64,000 bases of DNA from Octopus sinensis (Eukaryota), in assembly GCF_006345805.1 (NCBI RefSeq), contig NC_043007.1, positions 47,988,001 through 48,052,000 on the forward strand. The letters run 5' to 3'. The position numbers were made by a program, and so were the translations under genes. The notes below the pieces were generated by a model, which did no database searches, was not told the DNA's origin, and saw only the letters and a list, made by a program, of their open reading frames with translations. This document shows positions 2,322 to 62,156 of the stretch, one piece after another (position 1 is the first letter of the stretch; every line of letters starts with the position of its first letter).

Positions 2322-2412
2322 TCTTGGGATGAAGACTTAGAATATGTAGCTCAGAAATGGGCCGACAATTGCTATTTTGAGCATGAACCAGCATTCCGGA
2401 GAATAATACCTG
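2322..2412 (+). CDS. CAP gene 1, first visible exon (SWDEDLEYVAQKWADNCYFEHEPAFRRIIP-G)
   Basis: tttcag acceptor at 2321 and gtaaga donor at 2413. 91 nt, phase 0 to 1. CAP-type W..L...AQ.WA..C.F.H motif. 24/31 aa identical to the exon at 62066-62156. Confidence 0.93.
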
Positions 2413-2765
2413 GTAAGAAACATATTATCTTTTGTATGTTAATGTTCTTTAAGGTATTGTGAAAATAACAAGAATGTAGAAATTTAGATTGTGAAAATGG
2501 CTTGAGGAAACACATTTGTTTCCACATGTATCGTTAATCTATCTATCTATCTATCAATCTATCTACACACACATATACACTTATACACAGATATATATAC
2601 ATACACACACACATGCATACATACACTCATATATACCAACAATATATATATATATATATATATATATACTACAAATATAAGATGAAGTTTTTTTTTTCTA
2701 CAGAAAAAAATTCCATCAAAAAATGTGGCAGCATATTAAAATACCTTTACGGTTAAAATTATAAA

Positions 2766-3177
2766 CAACTTATAAGTAAGGGCTAAAGAAAATTATTTCA
2801 TTGCCGAAGCAAAAATCATGGGTACATATAAGTACCCCAGATATATCTAAAAGTAAAATTCTTTGGTCAGCCTCAGCACAACGTGGTGACTGTTCTCCAC
2901 CACGGCTTTTTCCATGGGCGCATGTAAGTATCTTATTTATATCCTTTCGTATGTTCTACTGAAGAGGAAAGAATATTTTATGAGATTAATTCCGAAATTG
3001 ATTCAATATAGAAATAACGAACTTTTTAAAAAATTCTATCGGCCGGCTTGCCCGATTTCAGTTCTTCGTGTTTTTTTTCTCTAGCGAGTAAATAATATGT
3101 GGAAATTGACGATTTAATAGTCTGTTATTAGCATATTGGCATTGAAATAATTTTCTTTAGCCTTTACTTATAAGTTG
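2766..3177. mobile_element. MITE with about 40-bp TIRs (Tc1/mariner-type)
   Basis: CAACTTATAAGTAAGGGCTAAAGAAAATTATTTCATTGCC is mirrored at the right end with few mismatches. TA on the right flank, AA on the left. Confidence 0.75.
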
Positions 3178-3505
3178 TATATATATATATATATATATAT
3201 ATATATATATATATATATATAATATATATATATATATGTGTGTATGTATGTATGTATGTATGTATGTATGTATGTATGTATGTATGTTGTATGTATGTAT
3301 GTGTGTGCGTGTATGAAAAGAAAAACATTATTAAATAGTGCAATATGGCAGTATTGCTTCCCAGTAAAGCAAAGCACCATCAGGTTAAAGTATAAATCAA
3401 AGATAGTGGTACAACAATGCACCAATATTTACTGGAAATCGCAGTCGATAATATACGACGCTATAGTAAAGAGTCACTGCACACACACACACACATATAT
3501 ATATA

Positions 3506-3895
3506 TAGTGGCAAAAACGTTTGCGTGTGGCGAACATAAAAAATTTCATCTTACCTGTAAGAACAATATTAAATAAATGTACAACCCAGATGTGGATAAT
3601 CTAGGACCTAGGTTTCAAACTTTCCAAATTACTTTTGATAATGTAAATTTGATTATTTCTCTTCGGCTAGGCGTTCAGACGAGTAATATCGGCATTGAGG
3701 TAGCAACATTTGAAATTTTGTCTATGTGAATCTAGCCGAATTGAACTAATCAAATTTACGTTACGAAACGTAATTTGGAAAGTTCGAAACCTAGGTCCTA
3801 GATTGTCCAAATCTGAGTTGTACATTTATTTACTGTTGTTCTTACAGATAAGATGAAATTTTTTATGTTCGTCGCCCGCAAACATTTTTGCCAGT
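3506..3895. mobile_element. Fold-back MITE with about 130-bp imperfect TIRs
   Basis: tagtggcaaaaacg...ctaggacctaggtttcaaactttccaaattac is mirrored as gtaatttggaaagttcgaaacctaggtcctag...catttttgccagta. Inserted in TA repeats. Confidence 0.75.
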
Positions 3896-4114
3896 ATATA
3901 CACAAACTTAAGAGGAATGACCAATAAATTGGACACCTATTATGCTAAACATAGACGTGAAGTAGCCATTACCACGAAGAGTGCGTTTTCCAAAAGAATC
4001 TCAGCAAACCCCCAAAATGTTAAAATGAGCAAGAGAAATGAAAATATACGAAATAAAAAACGATTACCTATGTACGATGATTTCACCCCTTAATATTCAC
4101 TTATGTAAATACGT

Positions 4115-4426
4115 AAATATCTGCAAGCTCATCATATCTTGCGTCGTATATTATCGACTGCTATTTCCAGTAAATATCAATGCATTGTTGTACCACTATC
4201 GTATATTTGTATGTATGTATGTGTGTGTGTGTGTGCAGTGTAAAGTACGCTATATATCCAAAAATCCGAGCCCGAATTTTTGGATATATAGCGTACTTTA
4301 CACTGCACACACACACACACATACATACATACAAATATACGATAGTGGTACAACAATGCATTGATATTTACTGGAAATAGCAGTCGATAATATACGACGC
4401 AAGATATGATGAGCTTGCAGATATTT
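4115..4426. repeat. 312-bp near-perfect palindrome (151-bp arms, 10-nt spacer)
   Basis: The same 66-aa ORF appears on both strands (4161-4361 minus, 4180-4380 plus). Arms match by eye, including the internal (GT)n/(AC)n. Confidence 0.95.
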
Positions 4427-59119: not shown

Positions 59120-59960
59120 ATATATAATTAGAAATACTGCATTTCTAAATCTCTCAGAGAACCATACACAGTAGCAGCACGATAAAGTAATGGTTTGTTG
59201 CCAACTTAATGTGACAGTCCCAGGAAAGGGAAGAATGCTACTGCTATTTAGCCGCAAGAAACACCCTTTCTTGTAGCTACGTGACACAAGCGTTCTGTGT
59301 CCTTGTTTTCCAACAGGGGAGATAAGCACCTCCACCTAACAAAGCCAGCATCAGAGACTAGTTTCAGAGTAGATGCCCTTCATCAGTCTGGAGTAGTTTG
59401 GCCTTGCTAGCTGTCGGTGCTAAATCGCTGTAGAAAACTTATAGAATTTCAAGTGAAATAAATTCGCTGATCTACAAAATTAGAAATGCATTTCTAAATC
59501 TCTCAGAGAGAGTTATGCACTAGCAGCACAATAAAGTGATGAGAGATGCGTTCTGTGTCCTTAAGTTTTCTAACAGGGGAGATAAGCACCTCCCGTCGCT
59601 TTATCGTGCTGCTACTGCATAACTCTCTCTGAGAGATTTAGAAATGCAATATTTCATATTTTGTAGATAGGTGAATTTATTTCACTTGAAATTCTATATG
59701 TTTTCAACAGCGATTTAGCACCGACAGCCAGCAAGGCCAAACTACTCCAGACTGATGGAGTGCCTTGAATAAATAATAATAATAATATAATAATAATAAT
59801 AATAATAATAATAATAATAATAACAACAGCAAAAAATACCTAAGGAATAAGAACCAAGGGTCGGGTTCAAAATTCTATCAGGACACCTGATGAAGACTGG
59901 AGAGTAAATCAGCCGAAACGCTGTGGTAACAACAAACAAGATGAGGATACATATCCATCC
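59120..59960. mobile_element. Penelope-like pLTR cluster (direct and inverted partial copies)
   Basis: About 59125-59340 is repeated directly at about 59485-59595. About 59380-59545 is inverted at about 59595-59760. Carries CTGATGA motifs. Confidence 0.7.
59352..59390 (-). ncRNA. Minimal type I hammerhead ribozyme
   Basis: Minus strand CAGA-CTGATGA-AGGG-catcta-CTCT-GAAA-CTAGTC-TCTG. Stem I CAGA/TCTG, stem II AGGG/CTCT (one G-U), palindromic CTAG stem III, GUC cleavage triplet. Confidence 0.75.
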
Positions 59961-60039
59961 AATGTAAATAATATGTATACACAAGTATATTATTATGATT
60001 ATGATTATTATTATTATTATTATTATTATTATTGCAATG

Positions 60040-61440
60040 CACAGTGGCCCCTGCTCTGTGGTCACAGTAAATGGCCACCTATTGGACCCGTTTAGTATCG
60101 CACGTTCGGTCCGTCAGGGCTGCCTGCTGTCACCTCTTCTGTGTGTGCAGGCTCTCGAGTCACTGCTGCGGAAGTTAGAAAAGTTAAGAGGACTCCCTTT
60201 CGAAATTGGACTTGTAGGGGCTAAGATCAATGCCGACAAGTCGGTGGGATTGCGACTGGGCACCTGGAGAAGCAAATCGATGCCGTCGGACGCTTGACTG
60301 ACGAACCAGTGAAACTGCTCGGGATCTGGTTTGGTCCTGACCTCCAAGTAGAGGTGACGAAAATGGTGACCTCTCTTACCCAGAAATGGACAGAGAGGAA
60401 ATTGCTCCTAGAAGGTCAGGCAGAGGTAGTGAATGCCTACTATGCCTATGTCATTATTTATCGTCTGACCGTTGTGCCTTGCCGCAGTTACTGCTTGATT
60501 AGATTGGAGCGTATCCTGTTTATTTTCTTGTGGAAAGGACGCGTTCCAATTGTCAGGCGGTCGGTCTGCTGCCAATTTCCTTTGCTTGGCGGCTTAGGCA
60601 TGCCATGGATTTTAATGCGTAGACACACACTCAGGTTGCGCCCCCTGCAGCGATTTTTAGGTGAACGTGTGTGGGCTCTGTTTGTGAGACACGCCTTTCT
60701 GCAGCTCGTCTCCTTGACGGAGCTGCAGTCTTGGGTAAAGGATGTGGTCAGGTGCTCACAGTCCTCTACAAATCAGGCAACCGGATAGGTGGATGTTCCA
60801 CTTTAGATATTTACAGAGGATTAGTAGGAGGGAAGTGCGACGACGTCCTCGGAGAGACCCTAGGTGTTGACGAAGACGAACTAACAAATCTATTCCGGAG
60901 GACTTTCCGGTTGGGGACTGTTATGGATAATTTCCAGATGGCTTTGGCCTGGCAGTGCTACCGGTTCGAGATGAACTCTACAGGCATGATGTGCTGTCAG
61001 ATGGGTTTGTCTGAGGTGCTTGCGGAGCGATGAAACCGTTCTGCAGCACTTGTTCAGTGTCCGGGCATTGCTAACTTGTAGAGTTATGTCGAACAGCTGC
61101 TGTCGCGTGTCGGACAGATCCGTCTGTCCTCTGAGTCCATAATGATGATTGCCCCGCCGCCCTCCTTTAATCGGCCTGGCAAGGCAGTTTTCCGTTGAGG
61201 TGGCTGTGGCAAAAGAGGTTATCTGATAGATGAGGCTGAATGGAATAGGGACAGAAACTTTCCTCTTTGGTAAAGCTTTCATCGACTTTTTCAAGTTTCA
61301 CTTGAAAAGGAAAGTGAGGGTGGAGAGGGTGGTGCTGTCCGCAAGTGAATTTATGAAAAAGTGGGTGAAAGTTGCAAAAATGGCAAGAGTGGATGGCATT
61401 TTACCTGTACTTTCCATAGTCTCTATTATTCAATGGCTAC
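60040..61440 (+). mobile_element. Degenerate L1/Tx1-clade LINE (RT C-terminal half)
   Basis: SVRQGCLLSPLL, GAKINADKS, LLGIWFGPD, FLWKGR, GGLGMP, MDNFQMALAWQCY, LKRKVRVER. Confidence 0.88.
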
Positions 61441-61489
61441 GTCCTGGTACTTTTCTATTTTTTCTATACCTCTCATATTGATTTCATCT

Positions 61490-61740
61490 TCATTTGGGAC
61501 TGTAAAGTCAATTATCTGACAATTCATAGTTTCTTTATCTACTACTACTACTAAATCAGGCCTTCTAGCTTCTATTACTCTGTCAGTCTGAATGTTAAAG
61601 TCCCACAACATCTTGTACTTCTTACTTTCTAGTACTTTACTATGTTCATGTTCATACCATTATTATGATGATTATGATTATTTTTATTATTATTGCTATT
61701 GTTGTATAGCCAGCTCATGCTGTAAACATGTAAATATTCG
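61490..61740 (-). mobile_element. R4-group RLE fragment
   Basis: LWDFNIQTDRVIEARRPDLVVV...IDFTVP...KIEKYQDVAIE. Confidence 0.8.
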
Positions 61741-62065
61741 CTCTCATTCAATAGCCAAAGATAACCATCATTGAGCATTGTTAGTAGTTTCATGAGTGAC
61801 ATCTTGGTATCTCTACTTGCTGCAATTATCTTACATAAATAAGGGATCATTATAATGTTTACTACCTAGATATACTGTTTGTAGTTTAGATATATATATA
61901 TATACATTATTGTATGGCATAGATATATAATTTCTTAATATAGCTGAAGCTACTACCCATTATATTCTGTGCTTGTACATTTACAAAAGTGAACAAGATT
62001 CACAATACATTTTCTATTTATTGTCTTGTTGTTGAAAATTTCACATTATTTGTCTATATTTTCAG

Positions 62066-62156
62066 TACTGGGATAATGACTTGGAATATGTTGCTCAGAA
62101 ATGGGCAGAAAATTGCAAGTTTAATCATGAGAATGCATATCGACGAATAATACCTG
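62066..62156 (+). CDS. CAP gene 2 exon (YWDNDLEYVAQKWAENCKFNHENAYRRIIP-G)
   Basis: ttttcag acceptor and gtaaga donor. Same length (91 nt) and phases as gene 1 exon 2322-2412. Confidence 0.93.

Follow-up and report, generated by a model that had tools for sequence, protein, structure and literature searches.

A 64-kb stretch of the Octopus sinensis genome as a probable internal piece of a tandem array of venom-related CAP units

What do short CAP-coding exons strewn over tens of kilobases of octopus DNA encode, and do they belong to separate genes or to one large locus? The question is raised by a stretch of 64,000 nucleotides from Octopus sinensis (NCBI RefSeq assembly GCF_006345805.1, contig NC_043007.1, positions 47,988,001 to 48,052,000 of the forward strand), called the window below, in which a first-pass annotation made from the sequence alone had proposed a hidden tandem cluster of CAP genes with CAP-EGF-ShKT architecture and a possible glycosylphosphatidylinositol (GPI) anchor. 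The window holds the 3' part of one CAP unit (unit 2, seven exons) and the 5' part of the next one (unit 3), with three linker exons between them. It would be an internal piece of LOC115217114, a same-strand array of six units over about 290 kb, in which each unit is predicted to encode a secreted Cys-rich protein made of a CAP/PR-1 domain, a reduced hinge, an EGF-like module, a ShKT-like module and a short variable Ser/Thr-rich tail. In the main the proposal holds for a tandem CAP expansion related to venom; it is probably wrong about the GPI end of unit 2, and the architecture is not new. The gene organisation of salivary CAP proteins was previously obscure, and the window ties the Tex31-like salivary CAP proteins to one large tandem array.

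The 235-aa peptide of unit 2, whose last 16 residues read VITLNISLYQLFVDIF, maps without gaps onto seven exons, a to g, on the + strand of the window. All seven are flanked by AG and GT, their phases are compatible, and the lengths add up to 705 nt, i.e., 235 codons. Exon g was first read as 32263-32366 followed by TGA; it is divided here at the conserved donor at 32319, and the part upstream of the donor is called exon g'. The features of unit 2 are as follows.

2322-2412, + strand, 91 nt: exon a, CAP domain (SWDEDLEYVAQKWADNC...); AG/GT, Pfam CAP match
6375-6511, + strand, 137 nt: exon b, CAP domain (GQNL motif ... GHYTQ); AG/GT
25565-25653, + strand, 89 nt: exon c, end of the CAP domain (VVWAS...YVCNYGP); AG/GT
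28041-28105, + strand, 65 nt: exon d, reduced hinge with one Cys; AG/GT, hinge alignment to solved CRISPs
29484-29585, + strand, 102 nt: exon e, EGF-like six-Cys module; AG/GT, family profile against the PDB
30922-31038, + strand, 117 nt: exon f, ShKT-like or CRISP-ICR-like six-Cys module; AG/GT, sub-threshold Pfam ShK match
32263-32318, + strand, 56 nt: exon g' (ADYSSDGTTVSTKPVATL), up to the conserved GTAAT donor at 32319
32319-32369, + strand: read-through of the g' donor to TGA, probably intron, and the source of the hydrophobic 'GPI' tail; frame comparison and hydropathy

The earlier exons of unit 2 lie upstream of the window, and exon a is 100% identical to O. sinensis XP_036363357.1. 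In a protein search the joined peptide matches mollusc CAP proteins at E = 3e-60, and each exon is matched separately by homologs from bivalves, gastropods and a nemertean. Exon sizes, boundaries and phases are the same in three paralogs of O. bimaculoides, and an O. vulgaris gene model (P0123, described below) joins exactly exons a to g' with the same junction residues and is 98% identical. The seven exons are real, the frame goes far beyond chance, and the seven-exon GT-AG assembly of the first-pass annotation is confirmed by the mapping, the splice sites and the exon structures of both other species.

CAP is the sole significant Pfam match in the unit 2 peptide (PF00188, 50.2 bits against a cut-off of 21.1, E 5.7e-13); it covers profile positions 17-117 of 117, and the N-terminal part of the domain is outside the window. 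The motifs checked were GHYTQ.VW (CAP1), Y.CNY.P.GN (CAP2), HN..R (CAP3) and G(E/Q)N (CAP4). Unit 2 has GHYTQVVWAS, YVCNYGPGGN and GQNL, its CAP3 lying outside the window, and exon 3 of unit 3 has LHNKHR. An O. bimaculoides paralog, P0002, shares 49% identity with the window peptide; in its AlphaFold model the CAP core has predicted local distance difference test (pLDDT) values of 87-98, and the top Foldseek matches are CRISPs and Ves v 5 (E ~1e-14, 1.8e-14). The predicted fold is thus the CAP alpha-beta-alpha sandwich, seen on this paralog rather than on the window protein.

Behind the CAP domain the comparison relied on profiles built from 13 relatives with a Cys-rich tail. Against solved snake CRISPs, the part of the profile directly after CAP falls on the hinge (E 1e-5) and that of the last tail module on the C-terminal domain. 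The cysteines of exon f are spaced C-x8-C-x8-C-x9-C-x3-C-x2-C. On the isolated exon-f segment Pfam ShK (PF01549) scores 12.4 bits, below its cut-off of 20.9 (E 0.25), and four of the 13 family members match it at E <= 1 (best 0.079), all below threshold. The six Cys of the ShKT-like profile align to solved ShKT peptides from hookworm and elsewhere (Acan1, AcK1 and ShKT-Ts1) at weak E values of 0.25-1.6, and AlphaFold predicts three short helices for the 38-aa exon-f module (pLDDT 70.5). The Pfam EGF families give no match for the window segment, and single members match hEGF or EGF_2 at E 0.01-0.04. When the EGF-like family profile was compared with the PDB, 12 of its 14 matches were EGF modules (Notch, factors IX and X, EGF), with weak E values of 0.07-2.8, and the corresponding part of the P0002 model holds a hairpin with pLDDT ~80-85. 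In the EGF-like module the canonical third Cys is missing and a new one precedes C4 by two residues. In Pfam terms, then, the CAP part of the proposed architecture is significant and neither the EGF nor the ShK part is; a CAP-EGF-ShKT reading appears reasonable on the sub-threshold evidence. The unit layout would in effect be the CRISP plan (CAP, hinge, ShK-like last domain) with an EGF-like insert and a one-Cys hinge.

This content fits a known family. Gerdol et al. 2019 (PMC6409789) described molluscan 'CAP-ShK type II' proteins, which carry ShKT and EGF-like motifs, both hard to recognise, behind a CAP domain. Conus Tex31 and Mr30 belong to the clade, which is inferred to go back to the mollusc ancestor; it is mantle-specific in oysters and salivary-gland-specific in a blood-feeding snail, with no function known. 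Octopus members are not mentioned there. Judged by domain content, the octopus units are new members of this known family. They share with it the N-terminal CAP domain, the Cys-rich region with weak ShKT-like and EGF-like motifs, the ancient presence in molluscs and the salivary-gland or venom-duct expression in predatory species. They differ in having exactly one EGF-like and one ShKT-like module, a four-Cys hinge reduced to one Cys, Ser/Thr-rich tail exons, and six head-to-tail units with in-frame linker exons. The likeness is one of domain content and names; NCBI names the O. bimaculoides paralog 'Mr30-like', and Tex31 is the best Swiss-Prot toxin match of the O. vulgaris orthologs. A tail like that of the octopus units is also found in Solemya, Mya, Haliotis and the nemertean Lineus. 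For the 75-residue EGF-like plus ShKT-like module there are 349 cluster representatives, of which 111 reach E <= 1e-10; amphioxus and a bryozoan are among the 349. The module usually lies at residues ~215-300 behind a CAP domain, and is sometimes repeated many times. By these matches the CAP + EGF-like + ShKT-like architecture is old and not octopus-specific.

Vertebrate CRISPs (snake triflin, natrin, pseudechetoxin and stecrisp; mammalian CRISP1-4) have the CAP/PR-1 domain, hinge and six-Cys ShK-like C-terminal domain in the same order. In contrast to them, the octopus units carry an EGF-like module of ~35 aa between the hinge and the last domain, have lost most hinge cysteines, and read GQN rather than GEN at CAP4. 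Pfam Crisp (PF08562) has no match at E <= 10 in the tail of the octopus unit, and the four-Cys hinge directly before a six-Cys ICR that defines a vertebrate-type CRISP does not appear in the predicted proteins. Two other systems, compared by name and general knowledge, resemble the array in part: the SCP/TAPS arrays of Lucilia cuprina (PMC7694928) are local tandem CAP expansions in a secretory or host-interaction setting, and hookworm Na-ASP-1 (PDB 3nt8, among the Foldseek matches) has more than one CAP domain per protein. Both differ in being without the EGF-like + ShKT-like tail and without Ser/Thr-rich linkers.

The extent of the array is seen in O. vulgaris, where P0123 (CAI9730330.1, 1934 aa, 'uncharacterized protein LOC115217114 isoform X4') contains six CAP units in one frame and has a gene range of 287 kb. 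It maps collinearly onto all 13 window exons, all of which have AG/GT, and the same-strand tandem array expected to extend past both window edges is thereby borne out. Exons a-d are 100% identical to the O. sinensis LOC115217114 proteins, and the O. vulgaris protein differs at several residues. The four O. sinensis isoforms X1-X4 all exit the window after exon d and continue at exon e of a later unit, so that from exon e onward no window exon, whether of unit 2 (e, f, g'), the linkers or unit 3, is in an O. sinensis RefSeq model. The label 'hidden' therefore holds for these exons in O. sinensis and fails for exons a-d, which are annotated, and for O. vulgaris, where all window exons are annotated and fused into the 1934-aa model. 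Word-indexed protein searches gave a nearest match of 55% identity and missed the near-identical O. sinensis and O. vulgaris models, which surfaced in an exhaustive profile search with the Cys-rich tail.

Units 2-5 share 62-91% mutual identity and are 44-49% identical to units 1 and 6; units 2 and 5 (85%) and units 3 and 4 (83%) are recent pairs, and window unit 2 is 45-47% identical to two non-octopod relatives. On these identities units 2-5 form a local, octopod-level expansion, and it is to this expansion that 'lineage-specific' properly applies, not to the old and widespread architecture.

In O. bimaculoides the array has at least 5 units over ~177 kb (CM046611.1, 27.94-28.12 Mb); we refer to two stretches of this locus as L001 and L002 and to two paralogs there as alpha and beta. 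Window positions 33.4-59.7 kb are collinear with L002 at 80-96% nucleotide identity. For positions 1-33 kb the fetched O. bimaculoides DNA contains no collinear counterpart, and the break coincides with an assembly gap, for which reason the idea of unit 2 as a lineage-specific insertion was dropped. Orthologous downstream Ser/Thr exons had suggested unit 2 as the positional ortholog of P0120 (XP_014790560.1, unit 1 of O. bimaculoides); this was rejected at 50% identity, against 79% for unit 1 of O. vulgaris. The assembly gaps (GCA_001194135.2; L002 63630-65966 and 85252-86804, L001 5376-5595) sit where collinearity breaks and where one alpha exon and one beta exon are expected, and the O. bimaculoides RefSeq models P0001 and P0119 are truncated or fused because the gaps fall on exons. 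In the unit-1 gene of that species the g'-type tail exon is duplicated together with its intron flanks (L002 52064-52120 and 60070-60129), and the two copies account for isoforms X1 and X2 (P0120 and P0002). A relic of a degenerate unit (QKYCPQHLQG...NPTEC, like the exon-2 motif of unit 6) appears in the gene models as spliced-in linker between units 4 and 5, at residues 1250-1299 of P0123 and at L001 51386-51490 and 54563-54667 in O. bimaculoides.

Between the two units of the window and at the start of unit 3 lie the following features.

40941-40997, + strand, 57 nt: linker mini-exon A, Ser/Thr-rich, phase 1-1 (AVSPTVKGDTTLSIETTTT); orthologous to O. bimaculoides L002 77096-77146
42350-42424, + strand, 75 nt: linker mini-exon B, Ser/Thr-rich, phase 1-1 (ETSTAAPTEQADTTLLSETTLPITT); AG/GT
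47079-47125, + strand: 47-nt adaptor exon (ESRTTRVDATAEEPAM), entered in phase 1 and left in phase 0; O. vulgaris model, AG/GT
47981-48028, + strand: candidate first coding exon of unit 3 (MLSVILICSTGLNTDY, donor GTAGGG), proposed from the comparison with O. bimaculoides beta
48139-48214, + strand, 76 nt: unit 3 exon 2 (NCPNKYQKIANHSGCLSKSPLVKKS); 100% identical to O. vulgaris P0123
58088-58179, + strand, 92 nt: unit 3 exon 3, start of the CAP domain (MTDKDRNLIVDLHNKHRKDV..., HNxxR motif); AG/GT
62066-62156, + strand, 91 nt: unit 3 exon 4, with the size and phase of exon a; AG/GT

Mini-exon B is identical to L002 80726-80800 at 66 of its 75 nt. The 47-nt exon, whose size the first-pass annotation had already listed, is indeed present, and the O. 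vulgaris model uses it to connect the linker to exon 2 of the next unit; no counterpart is visible in O. bimaculoides, where an assembly gap occupies that place. The candidate exon at 47981 consists of an ATG and a hydrophobic stretch 110 nt upstream of exon 2. Compared with the 5' region of beta, only two aligned positions differ, and the candidate is more conserved than its flanks, with the donor position changed in beta. Exon 1 of P0120 has no DNA-level counterpart in the window. The window exons of unit 3 are all 100% identical to P0123; against O. bimaculoides alpha, exon 3 is identical at 89 of 93 nt, and three of the four changes are non-synonymous. The remainder of the unit is past the window end. 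Exon 4 is the second-paralog exon of the first-pass annotation: its size of 91 nt and its phase are as claimed, and its identity to exon a is 25/31 over the compared stretch rather than 24/31. Its stated distance of about 10 kb is wrong, since this exon lies 29.7 kb past the stop codon and the first recognisable exon of the paralog, at 48139, is 15.8 kb downstream.

Are proteins of this array made in the venom gland? In a re-analysis of the O. vulgaris posterior-salivary-gland proteome (Fingerhut et al. 2018 re-analysed, PMC7693380), CAP is the second most abundant venom family of the gland, and array members are the best hits of the CAP groups. Protein groups 168 and 690-693 have as best hits XP_014790560.1 (P0120, unit 1) and the adjacent XP_014790559.1 (PMC7693380). 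Transcript DN11042 matches the former with 74% identity and 96.7% coverage, has a signal peptide and is supported by 8 unique peptides; DN13184 i1 (~342 aa) matches the latter with 86% identity and also has a signal peptide; isoform i2 has 61% identity and 11 unique peptides, and isoform i4 has 37 peptides (PMC7693380). The 61% isoform, measured against the alpha + beta model, would correspond to the identity level of the unit-2/unit-5 type. The salivary CAP proteins thus appear, by best hits, to be products of this array; the proteome studies differ from ours in using transcript assemblies, and the genomic array was not described in them. The toxin-like context proposed for the window gains support from this literature, with O. 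vulgaris saliva proteins matching array members and Tex31 as the best toxin match.

We consider it reasonably probable that the locus is a salivary array of the CAP-ShK type II made up of separate tandem genes with read-through. The units would act as individual genes whose products are released in the posterior-salivary-gland (venom) saliva, and transcription could also continue across a unit border. Such read-through, given the exon phases common to all units, would produce transcripts of several units in frame, and gene models that are fused or chimeric. The favoured view of the proteins, by analogy to CRISPs, is that they are secreted salivary proteins whose Cys-rich tail is a fast-evolving binding part: the C-terminal modules would bind the target, an ion channel or some other protein of the prey, and the CAP domain would be a scaffold or a lipid or cation binder. 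Between unit 2 and O. bimaculoides beta, the ratio of non-synonymous to synonymous substitution rates (dN/dS) is 0.4 in the CAP exons, a value below 1 with p = 0.008. The tail exons give 1.3 (p = 0.03 for the contrast), and the faster amino-acid change of the tail fits the idea of a target-binding tail. Several observations weigh against this reading as a whole. The excess of the tail value over 1 lacks significance (p = 0.42), and dS ranges from 0.1 to 2 between the exons of unit 2, a spread that suggests gene conversion. The EGF-like and ShKT-like assignments, consistent as they are, stay below threshold throughout; the ShKT-like module has low confidence in the full-length P0002 model, and its separate 38-aa model gave no Foldseek match, the module being too small for Foldseek. 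The signal-peptide exon is outside the window for unit 2 and a candidate for unit 3, and expression of unit 2 itself is suggested by the identity level of one O. vulgaris Trinity isoform. Finally, units are joined in frame in models of three species and in two Trinity isoforms (~620-720 aa), so 'separate genes' is not established.

These in-frame joins are the starting point of a different account, which we regard as possible and somewhat unlikely: one complex locus of six repeated modules rather than a gene cluster, with one signal-peptide exon in unit 1 and a hydrophobic, possibly GPI-type end in unit 6, in which the Ser/Thr-rich mini-exons and the 47-nt phase adaptor are in-frame linkers and alternative splicing and termination give proteins with one, two or more CAP domains. 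Six units stand in a single frame in P0123, and the O. bimaculoides models P0119 and P0001 cross unit borders too, as do isoforms X1-X4 of O. sinensis. In O. vulgaris, a two-unit model is matched over 544-580 aa by the Trinity isoforms i4 and i5, one of which carries a signal peptide. All linker exons have AG/GT, the 47-nt exon turns phase 1 into phase 0 exactly as required, and in multi-unit models a signal peptide is found only in unit 1 and a hydrophobic end only in unit 6. However, DN11042 and DN13184 i1 are single-unit transcripts with signal peptides of their own (the former covering 96.7% of P0120, the latter ~342 aa long), a conserved ATG with a hydrophobic mini-exon stands just upstream of unit 3 exon 2, and in the window the frame from unit 2 into the linker is lost at the 56-nt exon g'. 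Most of the first relatives to turn up in other molluscs and a nemertean have a single unit and a length of ~300-400 aa. Shared phases and near-identical paralogs moreover make fused predictions and Trinity chimeras likely, as when the O. sinensis models jump from exon d of unit 2 to exon e of a later unit. In its strictest form the one-locus account becomes a 'concatenated venom protein' gene of ~290 kb, with one signal-peptide exon, six CAP-EGF-ShKT units and one GPI-type end, whose mini-exons and 47-nt adaptor are kept by selection and whose splicing strings together any number of fast-evolving units into secreted or membrane-tethered proteins. We think this form unlikely; if true, it would give a combinatorial diversity of salivary proteins undescribed for CAP proteins or cephalopod venom.

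The frame break at exon g' bears also on the proposal that unit 2 ends at 32369 as a GPI-anchored surface CAP protein, through the residues VITLNISLYQLFVDIF, which we hold to be very improbable. The counterparts of exon g' in O. bimaculoides are 57 nt long against 56 nt in the window, and splicing the 56-nt exon to the linker in the window frame gives a stop after five codons, which makes a read-through end of unit 2 conceivable. A hydrophobic stretch also lies 0-5 residues from the C-terminus in five distant relatives (Solemya, Mya, two Haliotis and one transcript-derived protein) and in unit 6 of the array, and in the window tail S, D and G, all small residues, precede the 15-aa stretch by about 10 positions. 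The composition is compatible with a GPI signal and weak, with a mean hydropathy of 1.66 against 2.0-2.6 in the relatives, and the signal-peptide exon is outside the window. Against an anchor, the 16 residues are the read-through of a GTAAT donor and begin exactly at it; this donor is kept in the closest O. bimaculoides copy and used by the O. vulgaris model P0123, in which g' is an internal exon. In that closest copy a 1-nt length difference just before the donor puts the read-through into another frame that is not hydrophobic. AT-rich intron readily translates into hydrophobic residues, which makes those of unit 2 doubtful as a signal, and the read-through of the homologous exon of P0120 is likewise hydrophobic. 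Neither AATAAA nor ATTAAA occurs within 1 kb downstream of the read-through stop. The hydrophobic tail is therefore probably a read-through product, and on balance the observations speak against a GPI end. The 1-nt difference in g' may be an assembly error; an intact-frame copy of the region is present in the O. vulgaris annotation. The difference might also explain why exons e-g were passed over in the O. sinensis prediction.

The same 1-nt shortening of g' can be turned into a case for decay, in which unit 2 is a non-functional recent duplicate of unit 5, skipped by RefSeq as not productively expressed. Unit 5 is a close twin (85% identical to unit 2 and 91% to the window peptide), exons e-g are omitted by the O. 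sinensis models, and window 1-33 kb is without a collinear counterpart in the fetched O. bimaculoides DNA. This last break falls exactly at an assembly gap, so absence is not shown, and the g' difference may be an error of assembly as said. None of the seven exons is interrupted, their splice sites are canonical, and no conserved Cys or CAP motif is damaged. Unit 2 is 98% identical to unit 2 of O. vulgaris, which there is part of an evidence-based model, and the dN/dS of 0.4 in the CAP exons against beta is significantly below 1. Decay is accordingly the least credible of these accounts and highly improbable, and we return to separate tandem genes with read-through as the preferred reading.

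The interest of the locus is mainly for cephalopod venom genomics and annotation repair, the units being poorly annotated additions to a family already described. In none of the three species can the gene models be relied on: O. sinensis skips half of the window exons, O. vulgaris fuses six units and O. bimaculoides joins two or more. For this reason studies of expression, orthology and selection built on these annotations will miscount the CAP family. With the annotation corrected unit by unit, clean sequences would be available for recombinant expression and for channel or lipid-binding assays, and diversifying selection on the Cys-rich tail could be tested properly. The in-frame linker exons pose a testable question, namely whether multi-CAP proteins are really made.

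The introns in the window reach up to 19 kb and hold remnants of long interspersed element (LINE) reverse transcriptase and endonuclease, mariner and Helitron-type PIF1 helicase, together with microsatellites; the first-pass description of introns filled with transposable elements was accurate. Rfam and tRNA scans of the window were empty. The 19-kb intron between exons b and c, filled with such elements, contains a transposon nest at 9155-15369: reverse-transcriptase fragments at 9155-9880 (+ strand) and 11341-11928 (- strand), an open reading frame (ORF) for a Mos1/mariner-type transposase at 12459-13340 (- strand), and a LINE with apurinic/apyrimidinic endonuclease and reverse transcriptase in a 636-aa ORF at 13459-15369 (- strand). 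The same intron carries a near-perfect palindrome at 18362-22602, with arms at ~18362-19399 and 21362-22602 that are 95-100% complementary, the left one (TG)n-rich and the right one (CA)n-rich. The composition of the arms explains the GC-skew swing of +0.35/-0.36, and the palindrome may be either a genuine foldback or an artefact of long-read assembly. Between linker B and the 47-nt exon, a 304-aa ORF at 43155-44069 (- strand) matches PIF1-like helicase at E 2e-39 and is a Helitron-type remnant. At 48538-54117 (+ strand), most of the 10-kb intron between exons 2 and 3 of unit 3 is taken up by two long reverse-transcriptase ORFs, of 602 and 519 aa, and by a further two ORFs that have no Pfam match; these insertions are recent, because the orthologous O. 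bimaculoides interval is shorter than 1 kb.

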